Part shown: one piece after another, positions 6,072 through 64,000 of the stretch
Position numbering within the stretch: the stretch's first letter is position 1
Layout of the letters: every line of letters starts with the position of its first letter
Assembly (NCBI GenBank): GCA_973895155.1
Contig: OZ316898.1
Location: 14,600,330 to 14,664,329, forward strand
Reading direction: 5' to 3'
Source: Marsupella aquatica
Taxonomy: Eukaryota > Plantae > Marchantiophyta
Length of the DNA stretch: 64,000 nucleotides
Notes under the pieces: model-generated
Told to the model about the DNA's origin: nothing
The model's database searches: none
The model's input: only the letters and a program-made list of their open reading frames with translations
Position numbers and translations under genes: made by a program

Positions 6072-7097
6072 GTGATGTGCACTTCGTCAAAATAATGAAG
6101 ATAAGGAGCAATTATGAAAGGTATCCTAGCTAGGGACATAGTTGCTATCTATTATAACTCGCTTATCAAGGAGTAAATTAGTGGGCCGGACGGCAGGAAA
6201 CTGAAGCATCAATATCTACATGCATAAAACCTGATGAGTAATAGAAGGATTGTTTCACCACTTTGAGCAAATGGGGTTTTACCAGCAAATTTAGACTGTC
6301 AATGTCTCCCTTGACACCCAATGGAATTGGCTGGTATTGGGCTTTTCAACGAGTATACTGCTAGTTTTCATGAGGAATTAAGAGAGCTATAAATTTCTAA
6401 TTAGTTCTCAATCTCTCACTCTCTCATTGCCCATACTCCTACTTCCAAAATTTTACAGGAGATACCTTTGACATTTACTTCCAAAAGTTTACAGGAGATA
6501 ACTTGGACATTTAATATCCCCATTGATATCCGACCAAATTGGCTGTTCTGGGGCCTGTTAGGAGTGATCTTGGAAAGACCTTACCAGCAAGCCTAATTTT
6601 GTCAAAATTTCATTGAGAAGTGAGAGACCTACAAATTAAGATGAGCATCTCGTTTCCTTGTTACACTTCACTCATCTGTCTACTATCTACGATATGAGCT
6701 CAAAAGAGGGGCTCAATGTAGTCCACCCAACAATCTTCTATGTAGGAGCATTTTGGCAAACATGCAGGTTTATCCAGCCAGGCTTCAATTTCCCTCTCAA
6801 TTTTGCTTTCCATCTTTTAAAAATAAGAAATTGAACTCAATAAGACCACCTTCCAATTGTAAGAGCCACCAACCCATACTGGCCTTTGGAAATAATTGTA
6901 TCAGATACAGTGACCCATGCTTATCAGTGCTCCATAGTGGGCATATAGTGCTCTATGGTGGGTGTATAGCAGATCTCACTGACACACCCACCATGGAAAC
7001 ACCATGTCCACCCAGTGATTCTCTCCTTCGCCACAGTTACTGTGCAGTGCTTCTGCAAGAGTAGATGCGTCACCAATATCTGGCAACAGGTTGTTGC

Positions 7098-7225
7098 TAA
7101 ATAAACAATTCTGGATGAGCATTCCGGAAACTCATTTGTTGTTGCCCATTGGGTCCCGCATGCAATAAACAATTCTGGATGAGCATTCCGGGAAAACTCA
7201 TTTGTTGTTGCACATTGGGTCCCGC
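7098..7225. repeat. ~65-bp tandem duplication
   Basis: aataaacaattctggatgagcattccgg..aaactcatttgttgttgc.cattgggtcccgc occurs twice back to back. Confidence 0.85.
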
Positions 7226-10200: not shown

Positions 10201-10684
10201 AAATGGCCCTAGGCGAATACTCATCAACAATCCGTTTATTGGCAAATCTTCTCTCAAGAGGCGATCGACAAGCATTATGAACTGGAACGACGTGTGAGTC
10301 GCTATATGCCGAGAAGATTACATTGGGACTCCCGGGTTACTGATTGATCAAGATTTTACAGCCTGTGAACCAAGCAAAGAATGAATGTATTTACATGATA
10401 ATTGATTTAGCACGCTTCAACCGCTGCATTCCTCGTTCTCAATCATGTAAACGAGTTGAAGCACTCTTAAAACTACCGTAGCTAACTCAGGCAAGTTGGC
10501 TTGCTCACTTGAAAATTAAGCTCAACTTTCATGATGCATTAATAAACTAATGCGGTCTAAATCTAGAACTGGTTAGCAGCTTGCTAAATACCCTTTAGCT
10601 CGTCGACTGATCGATCGATCCTCTCTCAATATAATATCTACTATTAACAGACCTTGATCACTGTAAACGACAGAACCCGCAATA

Positions 10685-15949: not shown

Positions 15950-16147
15950 CACTACTTTTCTTTTTTTAGCCAAGGTGGTGAATATCACCTTGTATGAATG
16001 AGAAGATGCTAGAAATATTCTTCTATTAATTTACGACATTACGGATAACGTCAGATGTCACTGCTTTTCTGTTTTAGCCAGGGTTGGTGAATATCACTTT
16101 GTATGAAGGAGAAGAAACTAATAATATTCTTAAATTAATTTATGACT
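15950..16147. repeat. Diverged ~109-bp-period tandem duplication
   Basis: cact.cttttct.ttttagcca.gg.tggtgaatatcac.ttgtatgaa.gagaaga..cta..aatattctt..attaattta.gac at ~15950 and ~16059. Confidence 0.75.
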
Positions 16148-16854
16148 GTTATATGTCACATTGTTAAAGAGCAAAAAGTGTCAAAGGTTGTTGGCACTAA
16201 CATGTATAGGGAACTAGAGTGTCAAAGGTTGTTGGCAGCCCCAAGGAAAAAATTTCAAGGGCCCCTAGGACCATCAGCCTCAGCCCGTTGCTCTGGCTCC
16301 CTTGCCAAGCTCCAGGAACCCCATAGCACTCCACATCCTGGGGAGGAGGTTTCATGGCTGTAAAGTAAGCCCAGACCCTTGCATAATACTGAGTGTACAG
16401 TCCAGACTTCCAAAGGTTATTCATCCTAATACATGTCTATTTTGACTTATCCAAAAGAATTGAAATAATCATCATAAGAATTCATGTGAGGAGTTATTTT
16501 AATTTGACTATATGAAAAACAAGTATTCAAAGAATGATTATAAGAAATTTAATGAAAAAAACTGCACACCTTTGTAAAAGTGAGAGTTAGTATTACAATA
16601 CTGTATGACAAGTGCATTATTTTTCCAAGGCACTAGTCAATGTACCTGTATAGGTACAATACTTTATGATTCAAAGAGAAGGGGGTGAACTTTGTTCTTT
16701 TTTAATTTTATGCTCTATTTAATGGGGATCTCTATTTACATGACACCTGTTGATCAATAAACCATGAACAATGTAAGCTTTATAACCAATGGCATATACT
16801 ATGCACTCATCCAGAATACTAGTTCCTTGGTTGAAGGGTCCAACCTTGTCATGC

Positions 16855-17030
16855 AAGTAAGGAAATATGTCCCTCAAAATGATAAGTAAAAGATAGGGAA
16901 CCTGATAAAAACTAAGGAAATGAATAAATTAAAGGGGCTTCCTAAGTAAGGAAATATGTCCCTCAAAATTATAAGTAAAAGATAGGGAACCTAATAAAAA
17001 CTAAGGAAATGAAACAAATTAAAAGGGCTA
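16855..17030. repeat. ~89-bp tandem duplication
   Basis: aagtaaggaaatatgtccctcaaaat.ataagtaaaagatagggaacct.ataaaaactaaggaaatgaa..aaattaaa.gggct occurs twice. Confidence 0.85.
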
Positions 17031-17731
17031 CCAAAAATGACTAAATTCTAAATAGTACATAGCTAAAGCATGGACTAGGTCAGATTAACATAGAAATGAC
17101 TTGCAACCAATTTGAATGAGACAAGTTAGCCAAAGAGTGTCCCACCAGATAGCAGCCTCGAAGTGCAGATGAATACCATATCCCTCAAAACCAATGTTTT
17201 TCTTTATAAGGTACTAAAAAATGCAGATTCTATAAGGCACCCCAGCCATCACTAAACGACAAATATCTATTGTATTTCAATCTGCAAGTACAATGGACAA
17301 GGGACTAGTGCAAGGAGTAATTTCATGGCCTTGTCCAGTTGAATCATGCAGTACAAAAGCCCAGTGCAAGGGACTGTTCAATGTTCTGACAACACACTGT
17401 GGGGAAATGCATAAGGTATTTTCCGTGTAGTTACTGGGTACATATACTCTTAGCCAGCATTAAGCATAATGGCAAAACTTACTCTTTCATCTTTCATTTG
17501 CTCGAGTAATCACTAGACCCCTCAATAGGGGAAAGTTACAAATAATGGACTAAAACCACCAAATAAGGAGATGAATCGCTAATCAAATGGTTTGAATTAA
17601 ATCAAGGAGGTCTAATACACACTGGGCACTACACACTTACTACCCCAGGAGCGAAGTAGCCAACTCACCTCTTTCCAAAAATTGTAAATAGAAAGTCCTA
17701 ATGAGACCCAGAATGTGGGTATTTGATAAGG

Positions 17732-17948
17732 TGCACTGTACCATAGGAGTCAAAATTTCAAGGTACCTGTCTCCCCAAAGTCTCCCCAAACCCTAACCCA
17801 AACCCCACCCATGTTTTGTTGCAAGTTACTTGATGTTAATTGACTCAAGGCCATGAGTATATTTTGCCACAAATTTTTTTGGGCTTTTTCTGGTTTCTTT
17901 ACGGACCCCACTAGAGGTCCCTTCCAAAATTTGAGACTCCACAGTGCG
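17732..17948. mobile_element. Small non-autonomous DNA transposon/MITE remnant with CACTG-type ends
   Basis: Imperfect inverted ends cactgt..ggagtcaaaattt / aaaatttgagactccacagtg. The right end (reverse complement ..ttttggaagggacctctagtggggtccgtaaa) recurs at ~26216-26268. Confidence 0.45.
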
Positions 17949-18352
17949 CCATGTCATCATGATGCGCTGCAAACAGGTACGGATTGGTTTACAAAATAAA
18001 ATTACTTCACCATTCGTGTTTGTGGCAGAATTTTGGTAAAATTAAGGACGTCATGCCGTAAACCTTGATGTAAATGTTTCAAAAATAACAGTTTGATTTA
18101 CCCTGAGTTACCGACTGTTCAATTAGTAGTAGGCCCACCCTCCATTTTATTTACCCTGAGTAACCAACTGCCCACCCTCATTCTGAATTGTGGTTCAATT
18201 GAGTAAGTAAATCTCTCTCCGCAAGCTCTGCAACTTGATCATTGATGACAAAGTAATCAATGACGAGATAAAGCGCCTCTGTAACTTGAAAATTGTCTGG
18301 ACCGTTCGTTCTTCAAGAACAGAAAAGAACTTAGGAGAACAGAGATGGTCTT

Positions 18353-18454
18353 TGTGTCGTGACAATTTTCTCGACCTTCTGCTGCCTGTGTCGTGACAAT
18401 TTTCTCCACCTTTTGCTGCCTGTGTCATGACAATTTTCTCCACCTTCTGCTGCC
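18353..18454. repeat. ~33-bp minisatellite x3
   Basis: tgtgtc(g/a)tgacaattttctc(g/c)acctt(c/t)tgctgcc occurs three times in tandem. Confidence 0.85.
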
Positions 18455-19639
18455 ACTCGCTTTTTAAGAAGGAAGAAGTGGACAGGGTTCTCTGTAGGTT
18501 GACAATTCTCTTGACCTTGTGTTACAAATTGTCCATCTATACAGACTAGCTATCTCTATCTGCTCAAGTACGTACTTGATCTCCTTGACAATCAATTATT
18601 CGATATGCGTAGTTGTCGTGATCAAGTCAATCGCTTCAATCTTTGTAACTATGAAATCAAAACTATGTATGATGCATTGATCCCCCAAAGGTCTTGCTAG
18701 CCTTGCAACTCAGAGCCAAATCATGGCTTCCGTTAAATAGGGGATAGATCTCCTCTCCTAGCTAGACTCAATCCAGTCTGGCCACGAAAGACAAGATGTT
18801 ACTCCAATGGATCGGCCACTTTGAAAAATTGACGGCTCTCCAATGCCTATAGGTACTGTAATTCGCTGAATATAAACATCTGAGGATGACTGAAGACTGG
18901 ACGAATGGATTATTGACGACCAAAGTCTTGGCTGAAATAACTAAAATACAAGGATCAAAGACATTCATGAACAGATATTAGTAAGGACCTCAAGTAATTG
19001 TATGCGCGTTGGGTTGTGCCGGTGTGCTACAAAAAATTGATGAAACTGTATTGCATGTTGGTGAACCACGACATTGCATCCGTGACCTAAGGGTGCAGAA
19101 TGTCCAGTACCGAGTGGTGAAAACATTTCCATGGCTAAAAAGCTAGTATTTAGATTTAGGAGCTGCCCAAATGCCATAGATCGATGATCTACTTTCGGAG
19201 AAGATTGCTTCTCCTGATCGTTCCTTAGTGGAGGAGGTTCCTGATTGTTCCTGATCCCCCCAAATTTTGTCTGTGATTGCTACAATTGTTGATGTTGGGA
19301 CTCGTTTCTTGCTGCAGGGAGAAGGTGGACATTCCGGCATCGAAAGGTCCCATTACACTCCAGGGCACTGGCATGAGACTCATGAAAATCACATTCACTC
19401 TGGACAATAAGGAAGCTAACGGAACATTGGCCAGCTCATCAGTCAAAGTATCTAGTGACAGATAGGGGTCCACGAACTAATTTTGTTGTGATTGTGGTGG
19501 GGGTGGGGGGGGGGTGCGGAGGGGAGGGGAGCAAGGGATGATTTTTTTTTCCGATTGAGAACTATGGAAAGAGCTTGTCATAAGAGATCTCTTGAATTTG
19601 CAAGAATTGAGAAGATGAGCAGGTGTCGTGACTCCACAA

Positions 19640-20029
19640 TCGTTAGATTATAACGTATTTTATTTCCATAGCACTAGTTAGGCTTTAGCAGACTAGGTAG
19701 CACTCAACTCATTTGAGTTCCAGGTTCCCATAGATCATGGGATGGGGTATACCCAAGGGGTACCCAATGTGTGCTCACATTGGAGAGTTCGATCTTCTTT
19801 GTGTGTGCAGAGGCTGTAGAGGGTGAGAGAGATCAGCTCATAGTGGAGCTTGTGGAGCTTGGCTAAGTATGGCAGATATATGTGCTTGTTACATTTATAT
19901 TGATTCTTCTCTCACGGCCATGGACTTAGCTCAAATCGGGCGAACCAAAATACTCACTTTGTCAGTGCTGATTAATGGTGTATGCTGGTTCCTTTGCTGT
20001 CATGCTGTCCGATTAGATCCCCAATAACA
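19640..20029 (+). mobile_element. Possible degenerate solo LTR (copia-type)
   Basis: Contains catggacttagctcaaatcgggcgaacca, resembling the cgtggacgtagccaaccttgaggcgaacca motif of the copia LTR at 29 kb, and ends in ..ccaataaca. The left boundary and TSD are not resolved. Confidence 0.35.
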
Positions 20030-22999
20030 ATGAAGTGGACAGAGACATGCTATGCCTTTGCAAGTCAATCTTCTTGGTCAAAGTCAGATAGCAAACAATG
20101 CATGTTTTAATAACCTTACATCTAACTATCTATTTGCAATCAAAAGCTAATTGTCCGGGTAGGCAGTCTAGAGTGAAGCCTCTAGACCATGACTCGGGTG
20201 CATAGAAGTTAGGAGTGGGAGTGGAAAACAGATAGTGAGGGTGAGAGTGAGTCTCCTAAAATGGTTATGTACTCACCTCTATTTATGTTCAATCACCTCT
20301 ATGTATGTTGAAACTCTGGGTACTCAAGCTAGTATCATTTAAATAAGGCCAACATAGTGGCCAGCATATTGATGGGGCCATATACTCAACCCTCCAGGCA
20401 TTCTCTAAAGTCGCATTGTACCCTTATCATTACACGAACTATTTGGCAAGTGTTATAGAATCTCATCACCATGTTACATGCACTCTTTTCCACTTCTGTC
20501 CAAGACCAGTCCCTTATTTCAGCTCCTTGTCTGGATGTCCTTAGCCTTTACAAAGAATGTGCAGATGGACATTAGTACTTTTCCCAGACCAAAGTGAGTG
20601 GACCATTTTCAATCTGAAATTTAGTTCCAGGCCTATGATCAAAACAGGGGCCTGTATGGGGAATGCAAACAATGCATTCCAAGAGAGTGTACGGACTTTG
20701 GCCACAAAATGTCACCCTTCAACCTTTACAAATCAGGACCCACCTGCCATGTAGGCTCGGGCAAACCAGTCTAAAATGGCAGCCAGAAGTCTGCTACAAT
20801 CAAGCACAGCCAGCCACCTTAAGTAGGCTGGAATTGCATCTTGGTCTACAATTTAAGTCATCCATCGGCTCATTCTTGTAAAGCCCCCTTAGTTGCCTAC
20901 TCACCCTCAATCAGTGTCTAACCCCATTTTGCTATGTTAGGGACAGCTCTAATAGGGAGTCCCAAACAAGATCATTCCCTAAATGTTATGGGCGGGGTGA
21001 CTGACCCAAAAATTTGTGGTCCCCACAAAACGTGACCATCAACAACTTGGTGGGTCCGCACCAAAAATCACTCAGCGCAGTATGCATCAATGCCCTTCAA
21101 GAATTGTCTGTGCAAATCCATAAATCCCCAATGCCCAGCTGATCATGGGATCCTGTAAAATACATCACAATGGGAAACCATTTGGATTAAGTTTTTCCAG
21201 AAGTTGGGTTGTGGTGAAAATTCTTGGAGTGGCTAACTGAAAAAATAAAATGGAAACAGCAGCAATTGTGACATGGTGTGATACCTACTAGTGAATTAAA
21301 TCAAAACCCATATAACGTAGGGTGGGACTCGAGAGCCTTAACTCCTGAAGATGAGGGACCAAGTGTGTCAATGTCAGATCAAGCATACAAATCATAGTTG
21401 ATAGTTCTGCTTTTCCTGGGAGTGGAACATGGACAGTGTAATCGGTCGCTGCAGATGCTGCCGATGGACTAATTGTGGTGGAATCATTTATGTCTTGCGG
21501 CTGCAGACCGCAGCTTTGCCGTCCTCGAAGGGGAATTATGCACTATCCGAATTGATGAACTGAGCTATTTCCGACAATCCGACGGTTCAAGCCGTGAAAT
21601 CCAATCCTCTCTTGTCGGTTTTCCTCTGAAGAAATCAGACGTTAGCAATGCATCCAATTTCCGCTCAGCAAGGCCAATGAGTGTCTTTACTTCGCCGAGA
21701 TTGGCTCGTATGTCATCTTGTGAGCTCCAAACATTTGCTGGTTTTTCTTTTTGCCACCGCCTCAGTGAGGTCATTGCGATTGCGGAGCGAGAGAACTACA
21801 GTAATGTAGTGTACTACTGTAGGAAGCTAGGATAGAGTCAACCCCTCCTCCTCTCATTCAATCCGAACAAGATTTTTCCAACACCACACGCACACGCCAC
21901 TGGACTCTACAGTGCTCCCCATGCTCTCGACCAGAATGATGCTTTCAGGGGCCCAAACCGCACCCACAGAGAATTACGGTACCAGCTTTGTGACCACTCG
22001 ATAACCAAGAGAGAATCTGTTAACAATTGAACTGATTCTATTTGTCTGCCCATAACAGGAGATCTGGAACAGTTTTTTGTTATACCCTATTGTCATCCCG
22101 ATTTGTAATTAATAATCAAAATTTTGTGTCTGGACAAAAATTTTAAACTGTTTATGATTCTCAAGAATATTGTAACGTAAACTTCAGAAACAGTCTAAGG
22201 AAAGTGAAGCCCGGATGGCCACCATGTTGGACACAATGCTCGGGTGGACCACACTTTGGTGGTCCATGGGAGAACTTGATGAACTGTGAGTTTTTAAAAT
22301 TAGTTTTAGTTTTTCAATTGCAAGGAACTAGAGAAGGATGAGACATCAAAAAACGCTAGCCCTAAATGTTGCATATTAACACAATGAAAATTAATTTAAT
22401 AGAATTTATCACTCCACAATTCATGATGAATAACTCAAACAAAATGGCCAAAAGAATCATTGTCACTTTGGTGGTAGTGTAACTTATCTACTCCTAGAGC
22501 ACATCCTCAAAACTAAAAAATAATTGAATTTATGCTCTTCAAGTTATTACAACTAAACTAAAATTTGGGGAATTAAATGTGGTCCATGAGGATTTCAAAC
22601 TGCCATTGGTCCATGGAAGCATCATTTTCACAGTCTAAGTATTCTCAATTAAAATTTTCTTTAATTGAAAAATACAATGAGAAAAAATTGAAGAAATAAG
22701 TATTAATTAGCTCTGGTCCTGTGCAAGTGGGGTTACTGACATGTCGAGGGTAAATTACATGCCAGCACCCTCAAGAAAGGATGAGTAGAGTTGCGACCTT
22801 GATCTGCACTAGTAACAAAGATGTAAATGAGAGAATCCTCAGGCCAGGCTGGCAAGTGGGTTATGACCAATCTTGAAGGAGAGTATATAGAAAGAAGGAA
22901 GTCAGTATTATAGTTATGTGTCACCTTGCCAGCTGCTCTTGTAGAGAATCTGACAACATCACACAGGAGAAACTAGCAAGCTTGCACACATACACGAGA

Positions 23000-35074: not shown

Positions 35075-37151
35075 CTTACAAGTTGTGGTTTGGACTTGCC
35101 AAATCTTATGATACATATCTTAAACTTGTCACCACCTGGTCCTTATGGACTGATCCAACTGCTCGCCATAAACATACCTTGGGTGGGTGAGAGATCGCCA
35201 CCCCTCTTGAGACATGGAACCATTGGTCACATCATTGCCACCTCTTCTTAGGCAAGCCAATGGGCAGTTGCCACAATGGCTGCTTCCCGTTGACCTTAAA
35301 AAAAATCCTGTTGCTTGGTGCAAAAAATAAATGGGGACTTGAGGGAGACAGGTGAGTTTGGGTAGACAGTGTCATCTCTGGAGTTGTGATTCCTTAGTAT
35401 CTGGCCCCAACAAGTTTGTACTTCCCTACGCCTGTTTCTAGAACTTGTTGTCCGGGCCATTGGGTGGTTCCCTACATCCATTGCAGCCCAATCTCGAGCC
35501 CGGTCACTCAAGAGTTGCCCCTTTATATTCTTAATTGGCCTTTGGCACATAGTTTTGTGTAATTGGATTTTTCCGGAATGGAGAGCGTGAAACTCAGAGG
35601 CATGAGGTGAGTTCAGCCCACTCATAAATGAGTAATTAACGACAAAAGTACTGAGTGTTGTTAACTCATCAAAACTTAGTTTGAGTTACCAAGGGAAAAT
35701 ATCAATCTGAAATCTCCCGATTCACTCCTGATTTTTATGGAAATAAGTTGATTCACTCAAGGCATCATGTCTTGAATAACGACATGCCTTGAGTGTTGCA
35801 AACTAGGCTTCAATGTGATTTATCTATCTGAAGGCGCACAATTAATGCTGAAAATACTCTGTCATGACGTGTTTTGCATCATAAATATTTATGTGTTCTT
35901 GTCCCAGGCTAATTAGCCACTCTCACCAATCTGAAGCACAGTTCATGATAGCAGAACTGGGTCTTTCGACAGGGCAGTCAAAAGTCGGTCTGCTGAAATA
36001 CTAGCTATCATGATTTGGTCTTCAAATCGTCAAAGTTCCACCATACAAGCAATGACGTGACAGCATAATAGACAGTTCGAGAATGCCTCTGGGATTACAG
36101 TCCCTACCTTCATCCTATCGAAACAGCATGATGGGGGACATCCCCAACCGCCCTGGGGACCGGCGTGGCAGGATATCAAGCTGATATATTATTGTACCTG
36201 GATGACAAGGCTCTACAGTAGTGATCTACCGCACCTACTTGATGATGGTAGTGATATGGTGTAGCTGAAACATATGTCAAAATACAGAAAATCACTTTAT
36301 TCTTCCACTCATATCTTGGGAAGTTGTGACTGCATAATTATACATATTCTGGCTAATCTGCTGAGCCGCGCTCAGTCGAAATCTTGGTAGATTCTTGATT
36401 ATTTGCACACACCTTTCGTTCAAAGAGACAGGTTCTTAGTCACAGGTTCATTGACTGCCTCATACTGCTGGCATCTATTTACGCCGGATCTGATGGCTCG
36501 CTTTTGTATCGTGCACCCTGTTTCAGCAACGATTGGCTACTCGTTTTTGCTAGCAGAGCTTCTCGAGTGACCCGATTCACTGATCCAGGATTGAGCACTA
36601 GTATCATCGTCTGAGCTCTTATTATTATAATACATAGAACTTTGGAGTCTACAGTACAACCAAGTTTACCGTGTGATCTGAATGGAAATCCCTCGGTGAG
36701 TGTCGTTTTGATGTACTGGAGACAAAATAAATTTGTTGTGAGTGTTTGGCCTCATTGGGAGATGGGAGGAGATCGTTAGGACGATGACTTTATACTACCG
36801 GTAGCTCAAGGGGAACACCCTCTACAATGTGGGCCTGTGGAGAAGAACTTCGTCAAGGTTCTCATGCTGGCTTTACAAGACCTCGGGGGTCATCATGTTT
36901 CTTGTTATTCCCTTTGACATTAAATCTGGACCATATATAAGTGTGGAAGCGATTGCAATTGGCTTGCTTTACCGGAGGTGTGGGGCCATTGAGGTATGGT
37001 ATTTACTGATCCTGGCAAAGAGTGGGCCCAACTAAATGCTGATGGGAGTGCTGATGTTCTCTAGAAGTTTAGACCACATTTTCCAAACTTCACTCAAAAG
37101 AACTGAACTTTATTTCAACAGATTTTTGGTTTGGAGTTTATCTTTACAACA

Positions 37152-37644
37152 AGTGACAATAAATAACAATACTGGGCATTTACAAGTCTGGTAATTGAAA
37201 TGAGTACAATCTATATCCCTTAAAGAGTATCAATTAGAGGGCAAGTCTGGTGCCAGCAGCTGTGGTAAGTCCGGCTCCAATAGCATATATTTAAGTTGGT
37301 CTAGTTAAAAAGCTCATAGTTGGATCTTGGGATGGGCCGAGTGGTCCGCCTCTTTTGGTGTGCACTGGTCTCTCCATCCTTTCAGTCAGAGACGCACTCC
37401 TGGCCTTAACTGGCTGCGATGCGGAGTCGACTATGTTACTCTGAAAAAATTTAAGCGCTCAAAGCAAGCCTATGCTCTGAAGACATTAGCATGGAATAAC
37501 TTGATAGGACTCTGACTGGTCCTATTTTGTTGGTCTTTGGGATCGGAGTAGATTACTAGGGACAGTTGGGGGCATTTGTATTTCATTGCCAGAGCTGAAA
37601 TTCTTGGATTTATGAAAGACAAACTTCTGCAAAAGCATTTGCCA
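37152..37644 (+). pseudogene. Degenerate 18S rRNA gene fragment (~490 bp, V3-V4 region)
   Basis: gtgacaataaataacaatac..gagggcaagtctggtgccagcagc(t)g(t)ggtaa..agttaaaaagctc(a)tagttgga..caaagcaagcc..ttagcatggaataac..gaaattcttggatttatgaaagac..aaagcatttgcca. It is colinear with plant 18S but has many substitutions and no flanking rDNA. Confidence 0.9.
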
Positions 37645-38489
37645 TGGCAAAAGAAGATCCTGCCAAAAGTTGCATGGAAGTTGAAGAATAATGTCAAAAC
37701 CTCAATGGGGCATTACTAGGTAAAAATTTGACGGTTTGGGTCGCAATTTGTATCGATCTTCATCGAATCGCCAAGAGCTTTCCAGTGCCGTCAAGAAATC
37801 CAGAATCCAATTGGGATTAACAAGTTACAACCCAAAATGACTGCCAAACTCAACAAATGGATGGAAATTTGTGTGTCCCAAAGGCTCTGAGTCTTAACCC
37901 TAAACCCTAACTTCATTACCTTGAAATGGTGGACTGGGGTCTAGAGAGCAAATCCAGCTCCATGCCCGTTTGGAGGCTTTGAAAGAGGGAGGGGCACAGC
38001 TAACACCCCGGGTCCTCACTTTTTTTCTTCCAACCACCACACTTGAATAAATTTAGGGTTTTTTCATTGGGTTTAGTGAAAGACTTTTTTTTTTTTTTTA
38101 AGAACGTTAGGGGTTGTTTTGATCTAATTTTGAGAATTATAAGAATCATAGGGTTTTTTGAAATCAAATTTGAAAATATTCAAAAAACTTTATTGACTTA
38201 AGTTTTAGGGTGTTTATTCCCTCAAAACTTTGCGCGTGATATGGGACACCCCTTGGATTGAGGCCCCTAAGAGCTAACAGGGTCAGGAGGGGGCTGGGAA
38301 TGTTATTGTGCGTGTTGGCGATGTTGGCACCAGTCCCGCCCACACTGATGAGGGAGGGAGATGTCAACCCAACCACTGTCAGGGCAAGTGTGCAGGGGGT
38401 GCTCATCCTGGGAGGGAGAAGAAAAAGACTGGACAGGAGGTGGGGGTGGAACAAACGTGTACAACATAATACACTGCACAAATTTCATT

Positions 38490-54026: not shown

Positions 54027-54138
54027 TGTTGAAAGCCTCCGTCCTAGCGCAGGACTCCACTTCTCCCGGTTTGACCTTGCCCGTCAAATTGGGCGTTTGA
54101 GAGCGGCAAATTGACAACCCGGCACCCGGGTTCGGAAG

Positions 54139-54590
54139 CAGTCCGGGAAAGGAAACGTCCGGTTCGGGGTTCGGGTTCGGGAGGAGGTTCGGGAGGAGGT
54201 TCGGGTGGGGGTCCGGGTGACTAATCGGGTCCGGGTCCGGGGCGGAGGCGCTCGGTGGGGGCTCGGGGTGGGGTTCGGGTCCGCTCGGTGGGGGTTCGGG
54301 GTGGGGTCCGGGTGCGGCTCGGGTCCGGGAGGAGGAGGTGCGGGGGGTTCGGGTGGGGGTCCGGGTGGAGTTCGGGTCCGGGTCCGAGGGGTTCGGGTTC
54401 GGGAGGTACGGGGGGTTCGGGTGGGGTCCGGGCCCGGGGCGGAGGCACTCGGTGGGGGTTCGGGGTGGGGTCCGGGTGGGGTTCGGGTCCGGGAGGCCGG
54501 GGTGGCTCCGGGTGGGGTTCGGGGTTCGGGGTCCGGTTCGGGGTTCGGGGTCCGGTTCGGGGTTTGGAAGTTCGGGGTTCGGGATTGAGG
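54139..54590. repeat. G-rich subterminal repeat array (GGGTTCGG / GGGTCCGG)
   Basis: Dozens of degenerate gggt(t/c)cgg units, likely transposase-binding sites. Confidence 0.85.
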
Positions 54591-54710
54591 CTCGGAGAAT
54601 TAGGGTTTCTTACGGTTGGAGGATGGGGCCGGCCGGGAAAGGGTCGGGGGCTCGGGAGAGGATAAAAGGAGGAGATCCCTCCTCCCCCTCCTCATTTTCG
54701 GTTTTGCAGA

Positions 54711-54824
54711 AAGGAGGAGGAGGAGGAGAGGAGGAGAGGAGGAGGAGAAGGAGGAGGAGGAGGAGAGGAGGAGGAGGAGGAGAGGAGGAGGAGGAGGAGG
54801 AGAGTAGGAGAAGAGGAGGAGGAG
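54711..54824 (+). repeat. (GGA)n purine microsatellite
   Basis: Read directly; it ends at a consensus donor GAG|GTAAGT (54825). Confidence 0.9.
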
Positions 54825-54942
54825 GTAAGTGTTTGGTTTTGGTTTTTATTTTTGATTTTTGGTTTATTTTTGTTTGTTTGTGTTTTGTTTTGTGATTTTT
54901 TAAGTTTTCTTTGTGTTTTAAACCCTAACCTTAGAGCCAAAT

Positions 54943-55329
54943 GGAGGGATATAAAGAAACACTTGTACGCGCACGCTTTGAGCCTCGGTTCGGTTTGCGA
55001 TACTCCGTACAAGAATTTCTTAATATCACCTTAACAATTTAGTCTCCTTTGTTCATTAAGTAAAACATTTGCGGAGATAGAGGAATCCATGTACGCATGC
55101 TTAGAGTTTCGGCTCGGTCTGCGATACTTTGCATGGATACCACGATTCGCCGAGAATGTTTTTACTTGAATTACAAATGAGTGTTAAGTTATAGACACCA
55201 AATCACATATGTCGAAGCAGGAATATAACAACTTTGAAAGAAAAGAACACTTTTGTGCGCATGCTTTGAGCGTCCGCTCGGTCTGCGATATTTCACAACT
55301 GTTGTCTTTCTATTTTATTGTTGTTATAT
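54943..55329 (+). ncRNA. Cluster of three miRNA-like hairpins with a shared ~36-40 nt loop and unique stems
   Basis: Arms gatataaagaaacacttgtacg / cgtacaagaatttcttaatatc (54948-55027); aagtaaaacatttgcggagatagaggaatccatg / catggataccacgattcgccgagaatgtttttactt (55058-55167); atataacaac..gaaaagaaca..ttgtg / cacaa.tgttgtctttc..gttgttatat (55223-55329). Each encloses cgca(c/t)gctt(t/a)gag....g(g/c)tcggt(t/c)tgcgata. Expression is unknown. Confidence 0.55.
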
Positions 55330-55517
55330 AGAAAGGTAATTAAAATCATGTGTGCAATAAAAATACATAATGCATGGGAGAAACAAACCGGGAAAAGATA
55401 ATAACAATACGACTTGTAATTTTCAGGTTGGTCGTTGAATCCTTATTGGAAGGATTTTATTTAAATCCCGGTAAGATCTTGTTCCTCCCTCACATATTCC
55501 TTTTGTGAAGGGAAAAC

Positions 55518-57119
55518 ATGGTCATCGAAAATTTTAGTTTAGAGTATAGGCAAGTGTTGGAGATGATCACAAAACATGTGAATGAGGGATATGAGCCGAA
55601 TCTTGTTGCTCTGGATGCATTGAAGAATGCTCGAAACACTCTCGAACATGCTAGGAATTCTAGCAAAGTGGCCGGGAAACAAAAACGGAAGGGGGCAAAC
55701 GAAGAGGCAAAACAGGTTCGACACAATGTGGTAGTGTCGATATGGAAAGAGATACTTTATCGCTACACTCAACCGAAACAGTATGGGGTGGACGGGTTCG
55801 AGAGGGAGTTCACAAGACACGGAGAGAAAGGATACAAGAACTTTCTTGGTGAGATAACCCATTGTATGCGGGAAAGTGTACAAAAGGAGGACAATTTCAC
55901 ACGAGAGCAAATGAAGTCATTTGAAGATGAAACTGAGAAATCGGGAGGATTTCTGGAAAATTTGGCACTCAACTTGGAGAAGCATGTTTGGGATAATTTG
56001 GCAGCCAAAGTGGAAGAGGGTGACACTACATTGCTTGGAAACCCCGGGATGTACACACACAAGAGAGAATTGCTAGTGAAGTGGAGTAAGGAGTTGACAA
56101 TGGCGAAATCTGATAGCAATGTCAAATATGCTAACGAGATTGTGCACTTTGGGGATGTCAGCATCAAAAGTGCTCGAAAAGGAACACGTCCATCGCGTGT
56201 AGTTCCAGAGGTTAGGAGTATCCATTTTCTTAAACCTGAGCAGGTGCACAACACACGTCGCATTGGGAAAGGAATCCAAGGAGAGGTATACACTTGTCGT
56301 ATATTACATTGTCCTCTCATTCCCGTCAACGTGACCTTAGTCGCAAAACGGTTCAAGGATGGAGACAAGCATAAGAGACGAACTGACGCATTACAAGAAG
56401 TGCTTATGGGAGGACTGAATCATAAGGGAATCGTTGGAGCTCTTGCGTTGACTATTGAGGATCCGCCAAAACTTATTTACGATCACTATAATGGAGGTGA
56501 CTTGGGTAGCTTTATTGATAAGTGCGGCATATCGTCAAAGAGCAAGGGGAAGGCACAGATCACGACGGACCTTGATTTCAAGTTCATTTCGGAGAAGAAA
56601 CTCTTGTTGGAGAACCGGTTGGGAATCGCCTTGGCTTTGCTGGAGACATTGCAATACTTGCATGAGCATGATCGATTTCATTGTGATCTTCACTTTGGAA
56701 ACATCCTTCTTCATTTCGATCACGAGCACGATGTGGCTATTAAGGTGTATGTTGGTTTATATGATTTTGGCTTGTCTAAGCATAAATCACAGTGCAAATT
56801 ACCAGCTAATCGGATGTGGCCCACAGCAACAGAAAAAGCAGCAGCATACCAAAAACAATTTCCACAGTTGGCTCCGGAGCTTGTTCAACCTACCCCTGTC
56901 GAGTTTAGTGAAAGTACCGATATATATGCTTTGGGGAATATTTTTGAGACATTATTGACAGAGAATTGGGATGGAATGTCTAAGGGTTCACGGTTTTTGG
57001 GGAGGGGTTGGAGTGCACAAGTGCATGGCCCCAAATTGGATGTCATAATCCGTGAAATGATGGCCACGGATGCCAAGAAAAGAATGGATTGTGCTTTTTG
57101 GAGTTTGAAGATAGTTTGA
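55518..57119 (+). CDS. Intronless protein kinase (TKL-like, non-RD) with an unknown ~240-aa N-terminal domain; transposon cargo
   Basis: 533-aa ORF with all core motifs: IGKGIQGEVY, VAKRF, alphaC Glu (LQEV), HKGIV, YNGGDL, YLHE..FHCDLHFGNILL, LYDFGLS, LAPEL, TDIYALG, and subdomain XI Arg (DAKKRM). Confidence 0.88.
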   Translation: MVIENFSLEYRQVLEMITKHVNEGYEPNLVALDALKNARNTLEHARNSSKVAGKQKRKGANEEAKQVRHNVVVSIWKEILYRYTQPKQYGVDGFEREFTRHGEKGYKNFLGEITHCMRESVQKEDNFTREQMKSFEDETEKSGGFLENLALNLEKHVWDNLAAKVEEGDTTLLGNPGMYTHKRELLVKWSKELTMAKSDSNVKYANEIVHFGDVSIKSARKGTRPSRVVPEVRSIHFLKPEQVHNTRRIGKGIQGEVYTCRILHCPLIPVNVTLVAKRFKDGDKHKRRTDALQEVLMGGLNHKGIVGALALTIEDPPKLIYDHYNGGDLGSFIDKCGISSKSKGKAQITTDLDFKFISEKKLLLENRLGIALALLETLQYLHEHDRFHCDLHFGNILLHFDHEHDVAIKVYVGLYDFGLSKHKSQCKLPANRMWPTATEKAAAYQKQFPQLAPELVQPTPVEFSESTDIYALGNIFETLLTENWDGMSKGSRFLGRGWSAQVHGPKLDVIIREMMATDAKKRMDCAFWSLKIV

Positions 57120-57472
57120 ACGTTTCCAGATTGCACATTGCATTTGCACAACAGTCCATATCTTAGAGATTAGAGATTAGGGTTTACACAATTTTGTAAA
57201 GGTCACCTTAACGATTATATGTTTATTCATTGTATGTCAATTACAATGTTCTGCATTTTGTTGATAATATTCTATCAAACTTTGTCGTGAATGCCCAAAA
57301 TTGTGCTAAATGTGTTTGTACATTGTCAAATATCGCAGACCTTTTGTACACATCGCAAACATGGGACGATGGGAATTGTCTTCTGATGATGAAGACAAAG
57401 AGTTCATGACACAACATCTTACCATGCAAGGGTCAAGGATCCTATTGTGACGATGAAGCTCTTCGTAATAAT

Positions 57473-59287
57473 GTGTTGGATAATCTTACAACCATTGGCA
57501 TTCACTATGAGGCTAAACCCAAGGTTGATGGAACACCGGCGCCAAACACAAGAAGATGGGAAGATGAGGGTATGAAGGATGAATGGAGTATATTAACGCC
57601 CAATGTAAATCCTCCCCATGACGAATGGGCCATGAATGCAAAGGAATTGGAGATGTTGATGCCAAAGAAAGACTTTTGGCCATTAGCACAACAAGTTTTT
57701 CACGATCCGGATCTTTGGGCAACAAGATCATGGGCGCAAGAAAAATTCACCATGTCCAAAGTAACACATGCAGGTGTTAAATCACATTGGCAGCAACAAT
57801 ATCGAGAGTTTGCTCCACACAAAGCCCAAACAAAAATGAGTTCCGTTTACCCTCCTTTTATCCGATGTCTGATTGTTGAATTCATTCTCAAGTGGAAGGT
57901 GGATTACCATTGGGAAAATAGTGCTGGCAAGCTGACTCATCAGGTGCATCCATCAGTGGTTGCGATTGCAACGAATAGGAATACAACTATTGCAAAGGAC
58001 CCTTCAATGGAGACTTCCAACAAGGGATCCAAAAGAAAGCTAGATGACACTGGGGAGGGATATGCGCATGAGAAGGGGAAAGCGGCTGTACTTCCTCGAG
58101 TCTCCATGCCTGACCGTGCAGCACCACCAACCAATGTGGAGTCAACGCACACCAAAAAACCAATCCTTGTAGGTGTTGGGAGTAGAACTCCACACGCAAA
58201 GAACAACAATGTTACTGATGCTAACAAGGATAAGTTCAACCTGCACAACATATGCAAGAGCTTGGGGGCAGATGTTGTAGAGGTGATTGAGACAAATCTC
58301 CGCACGAAGTATGTAGTGAAGCTATGTGAATGTGGCAGCATCAAAAAGTTCAAGTCACAATTGCAACAAGTTGATATAAAGATGAGATCACTTGAGAAGA
58401 AGCAGAACGAGCCGACGACCAATTCTGAAGTGATGTTGTACAAGTGTCAATTGTTTGACAAGATGGAAGAAATCAATAAGCTGACAAAACAACTTGTTGA
58501 AAAAGAACGTCAATGCAATGAATTGGCACGACTTGAGGAGAAGGACAAGATCATTAATGATCTTAAAAGTGAACTTGCAACGCAAGCAATCATCATATCA
58601 AATCTTCACGAAGAGGTGCAAGAATTTAACAATGGTGCTTTGGGGATGAGGTCAAACAAAGGGCAAGGTGAATTATCGTCGCCAAATTTTGTTAACATGC
58701 AAATCATAGATCCTACAGGGCACAACAACCTTTTTCTAGATGTGGAGGTTGACGCGGAAGGTATTGATAGGTTTTTTGATAAGTGGAAAAAGGATGAAAC
58801 TATGGCAGCATTTGTTCGTGAAAAGGACGACAAGTGTACTTGGTGTCTATATCCTTGGGGCCCTGAATCTGTTTCCATGTTGGGAACCTGCGGTCATATA
58901 TGGCATCATGCTTGCTTGTCTAAATGGTTGAAGAAAAGCCAAAAATGTTGGTGTCGCACACCATTTCATGAACGCAAGTATGAGCAACGAGGATTGTTGA
59001 AGCAAATGCCATCAATGGAGACTCAAAAAAACACTGAAGATATGACTGAAGATATGACTGAAGATACTATACCGGCGATGCAAATAGATGAAACTCCCAT
59101 TGAACATTTCACAATCAATGAATATAATTTGTCAGATGGGGAATTTGACAGGTTGTTATTCAGTGGTCGACTCGATGAGTGGAAACAATATGCGGCAGCC
59201 AACCAGCCATCAATAGATGAGCAAAATTTGCAACGATCCATTCGGCGTCATCGACGACGTCAACAACAGGCAGAGGTGAAAACATAA
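57473..59287 (+). CDS. Coiled-coil + C-terminal RING-H2-like protein (putative E3 ligase); transposon cargo
   Basis: 604-codon open frame (first in-frame ATG at 57572; likely original ATG at 57361 in another frame). Heptad-rich region KSQLQQVDIKMRSLEKK..EEINKLTKQLVEKERQCNEL..LHEEVQE. RING motif CTWC-x14-CGHIWHHAC-x10-CWC. Confidence 0.8.
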   Translation: MLDNLTTIGIHYEAKPKVDGTPAPNTRRWEDEGMKDEWSILTPNVNPPHDEWAMNAKELEMLMPKKDFWPLAQQVFHDPDLWATRSWAQEKFTMSKVTHAGVKSHWQQQYREFAPHKAQTKMSSVYPPFIRCLIVEFILKWKVDYHWENSAGKLTHQVHPSVVAIATNRNTTIAKDPSMETSNKGSKRKLDDTGEGYAHEKGKAAVLPRVSMPDRAAPPTNVESTHTKKPILVGVGSRTPHAKNNNVTDANKDKFNLHNICKSLGADVVEVIETNLRTKYVVKLCECGSIKKFKSQLQQVDIKMRSLEKKQNEPTTNSEVMLYKCQLFDKMEEINKLTKQLVEKERQCNELARLEEKDKIINDLKSELATQAIIISNLHEEVQEFNNGALGMRSNKGQGELSSPNFVNMQIIDPTGHNNLFLDVEVDAEGIDRFFDKWKKDETMAAFVREKDDKCTWCLYPWGPESVSMLGTCGHIWHHACLSKWLKKSQKCWCRTPFHERKYEQRGLLKQMPSMETQKNTEDMTEDMTEDTIPAMQIDETPIEHFTINEYNLSDGEFDRLLFSGRLDEWKQYAAANQPSIDEQNLQRSIRRHRRRQQQAEVKT

Positions 59288-59626
59288 GCTGTTGACAATA
59301 ACAACAAAAGGAACTAAAACCAATAGTCTCTACATTTTGATGTTATTTTCATGTAGTTACTATTAGAGACATTTTGTTAAAATAGAAGCGGCATATCCTC
59401 TTTGACAATTATTTTGAACTTGTAATTGGTAAAGAGATTTTGGAGTGACATTACATTGCATATCTCGTTGAGTACATATATTTTTCATTGGGGGCATGGC
59501 GTCGCCCTTTGGAGAATGTGTATTTTTGTAAGAATATTCCATCCTCCAATCAGCCATAGGTTTTGGAAGCATATTGTCGGGCTCACAATCATATTTTTGG
59601 ACAAGTATGAGGAAAATAGACGTGAT

Positions 59627-61145
59627 GAGAGACGGTAGCACAGTGGACTCAGGTACTGATTCTCTGAAATCATTTCCAAAAGGAGATCGTGTAGCACAAT
59701 GAGTTCAACAAAGTCAACATCGCAATGGTTTTAGCCGCCCAAGTTGAGAATGATTTTGTAGAAGGATGTATACCTAAGTCCACTCACTTTTCCTGTCTTT
59801 CATAATTTTTTCCGCTATTGCTGCTACGGCCAATGACATTCATGCACATGCGAACCGAGGCCAACGCCTACTCCTTTGCCCACCGCAAAAATGGGCCCTC
59901 ATTACAACTTGAAGTTGAACGGAGTTTATTTGAGTACGAGAGAAGTTCTGAAAGCAAATGCACTCTCAGGTCAAATTTTCAGGTCCTTCGAGCAAAAAAT
60001 TACTGAGTATGTCATCGATCCGTTGGTTTCACAACTTCTCTCGTACTCAAATAAACTCTGTTCAACTTCAAGTAGCGTAGCTGCTACGGCCAATGACATT
60101 CATGTGCATGCAAACCGAGGCCAACGCCTCTACATTTGCCTACCCCAAAAATGGGCCTTGATTAGAACTTGAAGTTGAACAGAGTTTTTTTCATTATGAG
60201 AAGGTTTATTCAAGCAATGGCACTCTCAGGTCAAAATTTCAGGTCCTCCTGACTTTGTTATTATTGAATATGTCCGTGCTCCGTTGCTTGAATAAATCTT
60301 CTGATAATGAAATGAACTGACCAATTACTGGAGTACGGCTGCTACGGCCTATGACATTAATTCGCACAATTGCATGTTTATATCCTCTCCTTTCCGAATT
60401 CCAATTCGAGCTTGGACATCCTCTCGTCAGCTGATCTTCACCATTGCAGTTGCTCTTCACGCAAACCGAGATAGCAGTCTCTAGAATCCTCGAACCTATT
60501 TTATTTCAATGCATCATTCATAGTGTTTGAGGAATCCAAAGGTTCGCGTGAGGAGCAACTGAAAGGGTGGAGACCTGCTGACGAGAGGGTGTCCAAGCTC
60601 GAATTGGAATTCGGACAGGAGAGGATATAAACGGGTGAACTTTGACTTGAAATTGGTGACTGTATTTTGCGTCTGCATATCAATTCGGTGACCGATCTTG
60701 CGGAATCCCCGTGACCCTGTCTGATCATCATCATGACATTGCTCTCCTTGGCCACCAATGGGCCCTCATTACAACTTCAAGTTGAACGGGGTTTATATGA
60801 TTATGAGAAGGTTACTGATTATGTAGGCGATGTGATCATTTCACAACTTCTCTCATAGTCATATAAACTCTGCCCAACTTCAAGTAGTGCAGCTGCTACG
60901 GTCAACGACATTCACCCACCCCAAAAATGGGCCCTCGTTACAACTTCAAGTTCAACTAAGTTTATTTTATTACGAGAAGGTTTATTCAAGCAATGACATT
61001 CTCAGGTCCAATAATGAGGTCCTCTCGACCTCATTATTATTGAATATGACGGTGCTCTATTGCTGGACTAAATCTTCGCATAGTGAAATGAACTAACCAA
61101 TTCATGGAGGGGGCTGGTATGGACTACGGCTGCTATGGCCAACAA
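59627..61145 (+). ncRNA. Tandem array of fold-back hairpins (four ~260-bp-type units, one long 92-bp-stem hairpin, one upstream imperfect hairpin)
   Basis: Scaffold motifs gctgctacggccaatgacatt (59820, 60080, 60338, 60892, 61129) and aatgggccctcattacaacttgaagttgaac (59890, 60150, 60757, 60926). Inverted arms at 59907-59947/60033-60073, 60190-60220/60281-60311, 60376-60467/60541-60632, 60774-60813/60845-60885 and 60959-60994/61059-61094. Confidence 0.65.
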
Positions 61146-61381
61146 CAAGGTACTTTGAAATAGTCAGTGTTGGAGATTTGGAAAACATGTTGCGTTGGTG
61201 TGTCTCTATGACATTCTCAAATGCAAATACAAATAAATTATTCAATCATTGTACAATAATAAACACACTGCAAGACAATACAATCATGTTACAAAAAATA
61301 TAATTGTTTATAATTTTGTCTATGTCAGATACGACAATATAAGAGTAGCAACACTTGATATTATCCTAATGAAAAGATGCT

Positions 61382-64000
61382 TCAAGGCTGTGAAGAGAAA
61401 TTTCGTGCATTGTTGTTACAATTTTTGCACAAAAGCGCATTCCACTCGTCTTGTTTATCGCCCCAACTAAGTGGATCACGATTGTGTGACTGAACATTGT
61501 GCGACGTTTCTTGAAATGATGATATTCCTCGAAACCCACCAAGGCCAATAGGCCTGTTCGACGTATATGGATTCATGACACTTGGCCCTGCATACGCATT
61601 CAAGGGTGGACCTGCATGGTGTTGCCAGTTTGCATGTGGGTCGTTTGAAGTTTGACCTTCATGATTGTTGTATCCATGAAAAAAGGTTGATGTCCTTCCA
61701 TCCGTCGGATGCCCTGCTGTGCCTGTGCGTTGCTCGTTGAAATATGGTCTGCTTGTGTCAACATCATTCGCAAAGTTTGACCAAGGTGACCTTGGTTGGG
61801 AAGGCATCACAAAGTTTGTGTCCAATGATGCATCTTCCTCGTCTTGGATTTGCGATTCATCAATTGTAGGATACATCTCCAAATCCATTTCATTCTCCCA
61901 TTCCTCTGCATCAGTGATGTCTGTATCTGGTGGAATACGAGTCAAGAACTCACTATCCTTATCCAGGGAAAATCCGTGTAGCAATTCATCAGCATCATCA
62001 ATTGTATCATAATCTTTGACATCTTCTTCACCAAGAGCCGCACGTGTTGCATCGTACTCTTCATTGCTGCACAACTCCATGGAGATAGGTCTAGGTCCAT
62101 CATTTGTTCTTCTTCTTTGGTCATAACGTTCATATATAAACGTATGCAGGTTTCGAACATTTGTGAGCCCTTTCTCTACCCTCATGTTTGTAAATACAAA
62201 CACCAAATCTTTTGCTCGATCATTTGTCAATCGATTGCGACTTTTGGAATGTATAAATCCATACGAACTCCAGTTTCGCTCGCAAGCTGATGCGCACACT
62301 TTTTGGTGTAAGATTCTTCGCGCCAGGATTCTCAAATGTTTATAATCTGCACCATACGCATGCCACCACTCTGCTGGACTGACATTACCTATACTTGATT
62401 GGGCGGCTCCCATCGCTATTGATGTGTTGGGATTTTTTTTTTTGGCGTCAATGGCTTGACTGTGGATGGCAGAAATAAGTTCTCTGACGTCGCGATCATG
62501 GTTGATCCCCTCCTTCACCTGTTGTTCTGAATATCTAGCAATGTATTCATTGAAACCCTTGTAGAGTTCTGGATCTCCAGCGACATCTATGTCCTCATCA
62601 AAAAACATTTGGGGATTGAGATATGCTGCCGCTAGCATGAAATCAGTGGTAAGAGATTTTTTTTGATCCAAATACACTTTTAGTATCTTTGGTTTCAATA
62701 CCTCTGTTACCAATGGACAATCCTCCATGCTTGCTTTCAAAACATCAATCCCTCTTTTCAAACTCCAATACAACCAACCTGATTGCGGAGAATCACCATC
62801 AAATTCTCGCAACATCTTGACCAACGGAGTAAAGAATTTAACTGTATCCTTCACTTCAACCCAAAATGTATCTTGCTGTATCCACATTTTAAGTTCGTCT
62901 GTCTTTCCCCTCGTCATGTATCCAACTGATTTTGGTCGCAATGGAAGTCTATCACGAGAAGACTGCCAATTATCATCAATGACCATCTGTTGTAAAGCTC
63001 CTCTTAGCTCCAACGCTCTTTGTGCCATTAGGAAATTGGTCGCAAATCTAGTTGCATTTGGATTCAACAGTTTTTTGTCAGGAGATTTTCTTGCAAATAT
63101 TGCAGAAAGCTTTTGCGATGATGAAACTACTTTTACTATCCACCTCAACCGTTTAAAAATCTTTTGGAATGGATTCTGTCCAGCATCATCTAGCACTACA
63201 CGCTTGTGACCACACATATCCTCTAGCAGCAAATTAAACACGTGGGCAACACACTAGCTCCAAGTGACATGAGGATACTTTTTCATGACTACCTCACAAC
63301 CTGCTACACGATTTGCGGGTGCTCCATCAGTTACGATTTGAATAATATGATCTGCACCAATATCCTCAATGTATTTCAACCACATGTCGCCAAGATATTT
63401 CCCATCTTTCTTGTCAGCTTGCGCAGCATTCCAACTATCCAAGAAGAAGTCACCTTTAGAAGTCAACAACATGACATTCATCAAAGGTTCTCTTCGGACA
63501 TTTTCCCATCCATCTGAAGAAAGAGAATACCCATAAGGTTTTGCCTCCTTTAAAGTTTGCGTCATGTCCTTTGTGAGATCCTCCTTACTGTCTTCCAATA
63601 ATTTCAATCGCAAACTTCGCATCGTAGGTAGAGAATAACCATTGACAATCCCTTTTGAAGTCTCTATGATTGCTTCTCGAAAAAAAGGATTATTTGAAAC
63701 ATTGAATGGAATACCACTGGTGTAGAAAGCTTTCGCCCAAAGCTTATCCAAATTTGTTCTATTTGGAATTTGATAGGCATCCATAATTGGGTTAGGAAGA
63801 TTTACTGGCCTATCTCCTTCCCTTACATGTGTATCATCCATGTCAACATAGTTTGACCCTCGTGTGGATGCTTGCGAATATGAACTTCCAACGCTTGGCC
63901 TACGACCTCTCACATCCCGCAAGATATGACTTCCATCCCGTCGTTTGTACTTTAAGGTCGGTGGAACCTTTATCACATTGTACATAATGTTGATGGCATC
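61382..64000 (-). pseudogene. hAT transposase (DUF659 + hAT dimerisation domain), one in-frame TAG at 63254-63256; N-terminus beyond the window
   Basis: AFYTSGIPFNV..FF, YSLSSDGWEN..PLMNVM, IIQIVTDGA, W(S*)CVAHVFNLLLEDM, ATRFATNF, LVKMLREFDGD, AAAYLNP, PAEWWHAYG..LA.RIL....SASACERNWSSY..IHSKSRNRL...AKDLVFV..N. Confidence 0.92.

Follow-up and report, generated by a model that had tools for sequence, protein, structure and literature searches.

A tandem array of long hairpins inside a liverwort hAT transposon keeps its position, though not its sequence, across the transposon family

The 64-kb stretch of Marsupella aquatica DNA analysed here (the window) carries five strong hairpins in succession (A, B, C, D and E) at positions 59885-61135. 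Judging from its sequence context, this array is an internal part of a hAT-superfamily transposon about 12 kb long, in which it lies between the convergent 3' ends of the cargo genes and of the transposase gene. Comparison with related elements indicates that the array module is conserved in position, and not in sequence, across the transposon family. The preferred reading, to which about an even probability is given, is that of a transposon-borne array of RNA hairpins produced from the cargo strand and probably serving as a Dicer substrate; its transcription, its processing by Dicer and its biological role are what we infer from the sequence data described below.

The transposon spans the window from 54065 to beyond 64000, its right end being located outside the window (Table 1). 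The product of the transposase gene has a Dimer_Tnp_hAT domain (PF05699, E = 7.9e-11) and a DUF659 domain (E = 5.4e-24). Its reading frame is continuous from 63985 to 61385 but for one in-frame stop at 63254-63256 (- strand), so that part of the sequence of this copy would reflect decay after insertion, and the copy is probably no longer autonomous. The two cargo ORFs encode a protein-kinase domain and a RING-H2 finger, respectively, and hAT elements do not usually carry such an additional kinase-plus-RING load. Exact-protein look-ups with the kinase ORF of the window and with P0032 returned no record. The C-terminal part of the RING ORF contains, at 59033-59066, a perfect 12-nt tandem repeat (ACTGAAGATATG, 2.8 copies) that encodes a short peptide repeat. 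At the left side of the element, the subterminal region 54156-54600 is made of G-rich GGTTCGGG-type repeats with a GC skew of +0.35, beyond which come GAGGAG purine repeats (54658-54822) and then a T-rich tract (54832-54915). In the related copies from Calypogeia fissa, a leafy liverwort, G-rich repeats of a similar kind are found at both ends. The transposase may bind these repeats, or they may form G-quadruplexes.

Table 1. Position of the hairpin array and of the other features of the hAT element (window coordinates).
Feature	Position	Strand	Remarks
Left terminal inverted repeat CCCGGTTTGACCT	54065-54077	+	homologous to the C. fissa terminal inverted repeat CCAGGTTTGACAT
Cargo ORF, protein-kinase domain, 533 aa	55518-57119	+	
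Cargo ORF, RING-H2 finger, 604 aa	57473-59287	+	array starts 3' of the ORF end, same strand
Two weaker G.U-rich hairpins	59404-59579 and 59723-59836	+	upstream of unit A, after the end of the RING ORF
Copies of the conserved motif GCTGCTACGGCCAATGACATT	59820-59840, 60080-60100, 60338-60358, 60892-60912	+	
Unit A	59885-60079	+	5' flank motif 59890-59910; hairpin 59907-60073
Unit B	60145-60337	+	5' flank motif 60150-60170; hairpin 60183-60318
Hairpin C	60376-60632	+	92-nt arms, 90% complementary; 73-nt loop
Unit D (A-type)	60752-60891	+	flank motif 60757-60777; hairpin 60771-60888; short loop; z = -6.4
Unit E (B-type)	60921-61147	+	flank motif 60926-60946; hairpin 60959-61094; z = -7.4
hAT transposase	61382-63985	-	DUF659 and hAT dimerisation domains; convergent with the cargo

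All local inverted repeats of the 64-kb window with arms of at least 30 nt fall within the 1.3 kb of the array, with the exception of one simple-repeat palindrome. Throughout the array the foldbacks measure 117-257 nt, with arms of 38-92 nt that are 82-94% complementary. Four of the hairpins (A, B, D and E) belong to related units with common flanks, and the order of the array is that of a three-hairpin higher-order repeat, A-B-C, of which a second, incomplete copy, D-E, follows. Four copies each of the 5' flank motif AATGGGCCCTCATTACAACTT and of the 3' motif GCTGCTACGGCCAATGACATT are present in the window, all of them at the array, where the number expected by chance is zero. The 3' motif has, in addition, a fifth copy at 61129-61147 that is degenerate (GCTGCTATGGCCAACAACA), and hairpin C follows one of the copies (GCTGCTACGGCC at 60338-60358). 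Pairing is possible between the GGCC tetranucleotides of the 3' motif and of the 5' flank motif, and the resulting helix (helix 1) is 100% paired and displays no double changes.

The units fall into two subtypes. Units A and D have a basal ACTTGAAGTTGAAC helix and a conserved lower stem, followed by a more variable segment, while B and E are devoid of this helix and have a different 3' flank, the basal ACTTGAAGTTGAAC segment of unit B being without a 3' partner. Unit A forms 41 consecutive pairs plus an upper stem, with a minimum free energy of -86.7 kcal/mol. When the fold energies of A, B, D and E were compared with those of dinucleotide shuffles, the z-scores of A and B were -13.7 and -8.1, respectively (those of D and E are given in Table 1). 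The first-pass annotation of this DNA had described four units sharing their flanks, each folding on a stem of its own, with 40 of 41 bp paired in unit A, and this description agrees with the present data; the constant basal scaffold that it had attributed to all of them exists in A and D but not in B and E.

Two weaker hairpins upstream of unit A may be decayed units. They fold at -45.3 and -25.2 kcal/mol on the + strand versus -29.4 and -19.7 kcal/mol on the - strand, a comparison that is biased by their having been picked on the + strand. In addition, in a contig of a different genome run the end of hairpin C (60646) is followed by the sequence preceding A (59744), AATAAA lying between the two. 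This junction points to a related array elsewhere in which C is followed by A, and it fits the A-B-C higher-order repeat.

The closest relatives of the transposase were found in C. fissa (63-64% identity), and three C. fissa loci, L001, L002 and L003, were compared with the window. The region 54708-64000 is collinear with all three, in the order kinase, RING, interval and transposase, and the nucleotide identity of the ORFs ranges from 72 to 80%. The L002 element (6828-20471, 13,644 bp) is bordered by CCAGGTTTGA-type terminal inverted repeats (TIRs) and by a perfect 8-bp target-site duplication (TSD), GCGGATTG, while the L003 element is 11,956 bp long and has a decayed TSD. Short TIRs together with an 8-bp TSD are hallmarks of hAT elements. 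In L001, L002 and L003 the interval between the RING and transposase genes contains 11, 12 and 4 strong hairpins in 4.4, 4.2 and 2.2 kb, respectively. These hairpins are homologous among the three copies and their number varies from copy to copy, so no single hairpin is essential. Comparison of the window interval (59369-61310) with the C. fissa intervals revealed no detectable similarity. The kinase-RING hAT family occurs in several liverwort genomes. A more distant relative, L004, has no hairpin in the 2.7 kb that follow its transposase, on a contig too short to be informative, and the Logan contig L005 ends before any array interval.

One family of C. fissa hairpins, located at 13170-14731 in L001, 12826-13788 in L002 and 12269-12423 in L003, has a lower stem (CATCTCTAAACCTAG / CTAGGTTTAGACATG) that resembles the right and left TIRs of the element, down to a C.C mismatch that is conserved. 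The idea that these lower stems are copies of the TIRs was rejected, the resemblance not exceeding that of shuffled controls (p = 0.07-0.5).

Pairing is maintained within the array by compensatory change. In the alignment of the four window units, 95.6% of the cells are paired, and 7 of the 25 shared stem pairs are altered on both arms yet still paired. None of 500 shuffles reached the observed values, and sliding the partner gave at most two such pairs. The joint changes of both arms from unit A to unit D, which had been reported from the sequence at first pass, are indeed present. In the C. fissa hairpin family, with ten members, the lower stem (20-22 bp) is constant and the upper stem variable, with compensatory pairs at several positions. 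The L001 and L002 sequences diverge at 4.9% of stem sites and at 14.0% of unpaired positions (Fisher p = 3e-6); the stems of the C. fissa arrays therefore evolve about three times more slowly than the loops. One-sided changes between the same two loci kept pairing in a ratio of 24 to 18, versus 18 to 42 in a control slid by one position.

The mismatches between arms are not distributed equally with respect to the strand. In a strand-neutral alignment of the arms, those of the window comprise 27 G.T and 13 A.C on the + strand (p = 0.038), and all five hairpins are more stable when folded on the + than on the - strand. For instance, unit B reaches -63.9 kcal/mol on + and -51.3 kcal/mol on -, and hairpin C -177.0 and -169.9 kcal/mol, respectively. 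The G-U excess initially counted as about 10 versus 3 persists in the strand-neutral count, and this wobble bias points to a + strand RNA, as had been proposed at first pass. On the cargo-sense strand of the C. fissa copies the G.T to A.C counts are 75:41 (L001), 81:45 (L002) and 21:8 (L003), these three copies being related to one another and their counts consequently not independent. Summed over the window and L001-L003, the ratio is 204:107, and G.U exceeds A.C in 31 of 32 hairpins, the remaining one being a tie. Outside the arrays, transitions polarised in the comparison of L002 and L003, with L001 as outgroup, amount to 36:41 and 38:33 and display no strand bias, so a general mutational asymmetry does not explain the G.U excess. 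Taken together, the evidence from these sequences favours selection on RNA of the cargo (+) strand.

Near-perfect duplexes such as those predicted here (40-175 pairs) are known substrates of plant Dicer-like enzymes, and the array is for this reason best read as a putative source of hairpin-RNA or miRNA-like small RNAs carried by the transposon. The module fills the gap between the convergent 3' ends of the kinase/RING cargo (+) and the transposase (-), and grows and changes by tandem duplication of hairpin units, here A-B-C and then a partial D-E. It could be transcribed with the kinase-RING transcript, or just downstream of it, and this RNA would fold into long near-perfect hairpins that Dicer-like enzymes would cut into small RNAs. 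The arms have no match in the rest of the element, so that these small RNAs would act either on transcripts that include the array itself or on targets in other parts of the genome. Action on the same array would amount to copy-number-dependent self-regulation, or would provide the host with a silencing trigger. Several points count against this reading: stems of 40-175 bp fit canonical plant pre-miRNAs poorly, unit number varies between copies, the transposase of this copy is interrupted by a stop, L004 has no hairpins in the 2.7 kb compared, the search described below found no target, and the strand bias of the window, when considered alone, gives the p-value of 0.038 mentioned above. An extension of the same idea, by analogy with the miRNA clusters of herpesviruses, is that the array could be the own, rapidly diversifying small-RNA polycistron of an autonomous hAT family, selected on the element and acting in trans. 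Host silencing or defence genes, or rival transposon subfamilies, would then be the targets, and this combination of own cluster and trans targets is regarded as rather unlikely.

Two other accounts of the array, each of them also rather improbable, concern the level at which the palindromes matter. The array could consist of DNA-level palindromes devoid of any RNA role and produced by template switching or by misrepair of the breaks that hAT activity induces. The region separating the two convergent genes would then be an unconstrained spacer that collects inverted duplications, and arm-to-arm copying would mimic covariation. The chemistry of hAT transposition itself generates DNA hairpins, and the arrays vary in unit number and are unrelated in sequence between subfamilies, as could be anticipated from such a process. 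Moreover, template switching in replication has been documented to create, repair and maintain hairpins, together with compensatory changes, without selection (PMC8794818). However, a DNA process is strand-symmetric, whereas in each of the four elements wobble-compatible and A.C mismatches stand at 2:1 on the cargo strand, and transitions outside the arrays show no such bias. Nor does arm-to-arm copying alone predict stems that evolve three times more slowly than loops. These strand and rate signatures are also in line with an undiced, cis-acting structured RNA, the array then serving as a 3' part of the kinase-RING transcript with extensive folding. Such a structure could prevent the formation of dsRNA between cargo and transposase transcripts, or protect the 3' end against exonucleases or RNA-dependent RNA polymerase. 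This account is given the same low probability as the DNA-level account. The array is placed exactly between the 3' ends of the convergent genes, every relative uses the same position, the signatures of selection point to a sense-strand RNA, and the arms match nothing else as a target. However, near-perfect duplexes of 40-175 bp are Dicer-like substrates, and their escape from dicing would need an explanation. In addition, RNA polymerase II termination is not known to be driven by hairpins.

It is very improbable that the units are nested MITEs or fold-back elements inserted one after another. Each unit is a palindrome of MITE-like size, and the lower stems of the C. fissa hairpins are loosely similar to the TIRs of their element, although this likeness does not exceed that of the shuffled controls mentioned above. 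The first-pass annotation had considered that nested MITEs with TSDs of their own would contradict its interpretation. No TSD was found beside A (tcattaca / agcgtagc), C or D, and the flanks are not direct repeats. The flanks are shared by the units, and this argues for an origin by tandem duplication of hairpin plus spacer rather than by serial MITE insertion. The 64-kb window contains no further copy of an array unit. When contigs of four public runs (DNA assemblies) were placed on 57600-63400, two runs contained the array almost unchanged, at a depth that is single-copy-like (about 430-540) and rises about threefold over B-C, which differs from the high copy number expected of MITEs. In the same runs the flanking ORFs were several-fold deeper than the array, i.e. 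multi-copy.

The possibility of a host MIRNA or hpRNA cluster, with guides diversified against a host gene family and located beside the transposon by accident, is likewise considered very slight. The hairpin geometry and the compensatory changes would fit such a cluster, as would the conserved lower stem that precedes a more variable segment in A and D. As in plant MIRNA foldbacks (single, less than about 300 nt, with few mismatches and no large bulges), the hairpins are single foldbacks of 117-257 nt, and they are also long near-perfect intramolecular inverted repeats like those of hpRNA/inverted-repeat siRNA loci. However, the array lies inside the boundaries of the transposon, as judged from the TIR at 54065 and from the TIRs and TSD of collinear relatives, and the elements of the other species carry arrays of their own in the same slot. 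No Rfam family was detected at the array at the gathering threshold, and the E-value mode yielded only sub-threshold matches to generic long hairpins, e.g. MIR7533 with 86 bits against a cut-off of 230. Of the diversified miRNA/hpRNA cluster proposed at first pass, the array of related hairpins is retained, while an independent host cluster is not, the array being a family module inside a hAT transposon.

The guides proposed in the same annotation did not fare better. Variation is spread along the arms and is not confined to a guide window. A search with all 21-mers of the array, allowing up to three mismatches, gave no target above chance in the window and the loci among L001-L005; by our own estimate about three matches are expected by chance, and the observed counts were close to that number. 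The 5' arms had been translated as variants of an LF-x-YEK motif, against whose gene family the 3' arms were thought to be directed. Codon 4 of these translations varies between E, H, D and Y, and the 98-aa ORF that spans unit A retrieved no relatives in a protein search. The arms as coding fragments of an LF-x-YEK family were accordingly rejected, as this ORF is without relatives and no target exceeds chance; this also leaves the host cluster without support from a coding origin of the arms. A metagenome scan with a degenerate form of the 5' flank motif found no match. The loop of hairpin C (60506-60530) matches 18657-18680 (- strand) at 23 of 25 bases, which is close to chance.

Several known systems share some of these features. 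The LTRs of maize Sireviruses contain a palindrome-rich, fast-evolving hairpin region for which a role in generating hairpin small RNAs has been suggested (Bousios et al. 2016, PMC4728375). Both that region and the present array are transposon palindrome clusters and evolution hotspots whose position is kept while families differ greatly. In Sireviruses, however, the region belongs to a retrotransposon, where it is a promoter-proximal, cis-regulatory part of the LTR for which siRNA mapping exists (PMC4728375). The array does not have such an LTR location: it is internal to a hAT DNA transposon, between convergent 3' ends, and has much longer stems. Plant hpRNA/inverted-repeat siRNA loci and young MIRNA genes resemble it by their near-perfect stems of 40-100 bp or more and their one-strand structure. 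Such loci mostly originate from an inverted duplication of the gene that they target. In contrast, no source gene or target of the array was found in the window and the related loci, and the hairpins are the cargo of a mobile element, arrayed at least five times.

In MITE-derived miRNA genes, such as Made1/mir-548 (PMC1784062) and plant MITE-MIRNAs (PMC10004981), a transposon-related palindrome also supplies the hairpin. There, the hairpin corresponds to a whole non-autonomous element, folded via its TIRs, present in high copy number and flanked by TSDs, whereas the units described here are low-copy, without TSDs and inside a transposase-encoding element. By analogy only, the array recalls the polycistronic miRNA clusters of herpesviruses, in which a parasitic genome bears tandem hairpins whose position is conserved among relatives and whose sequences are not. 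Those clusters are viral, function in animals and have experimentally proven miRNAs and targets. The MIR genes of liverworts are of the same plant lineage as the array and have hairpin precursors too; for the array, no Rfam miRNA family was found at threshold. Among the MIR genes of Marchantia polymorpha, only one polycistronic locus has been reported, with two pre-miRNAs (reviewed in PMC9291395). In maize hAT elements, long hairpins are infrequent and confined to the TIRs (PMC10760457). In a limited search of the literature, we came across no transposase-encoding hAT element for which an internal array of hairpins, kept as a module, had been described.

Small RNAs are generally regarded as acting on transposons. 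A mobile element with an RNA hairpin array of its own, showing signs of selection on pairing and wholesale replacement between subfamilies, would differ from this usual view. If true, the array could be a built-in self-limiting switch, or a weapon in the conflict between host and transposon. For annotators of liverwort genomes, it is a warning that a "polycistronic MIRNA-like" locus may prove to be a module of a transposon.

Elsewhere in the window, region 37108-37659 contains two fragments of eukaryotic small-subunit rRNA (Rfam RF01960, 92 and 116 bits). They cover model positions 31-984 with gaps, and the region looks like a degraded piece of rDNA.
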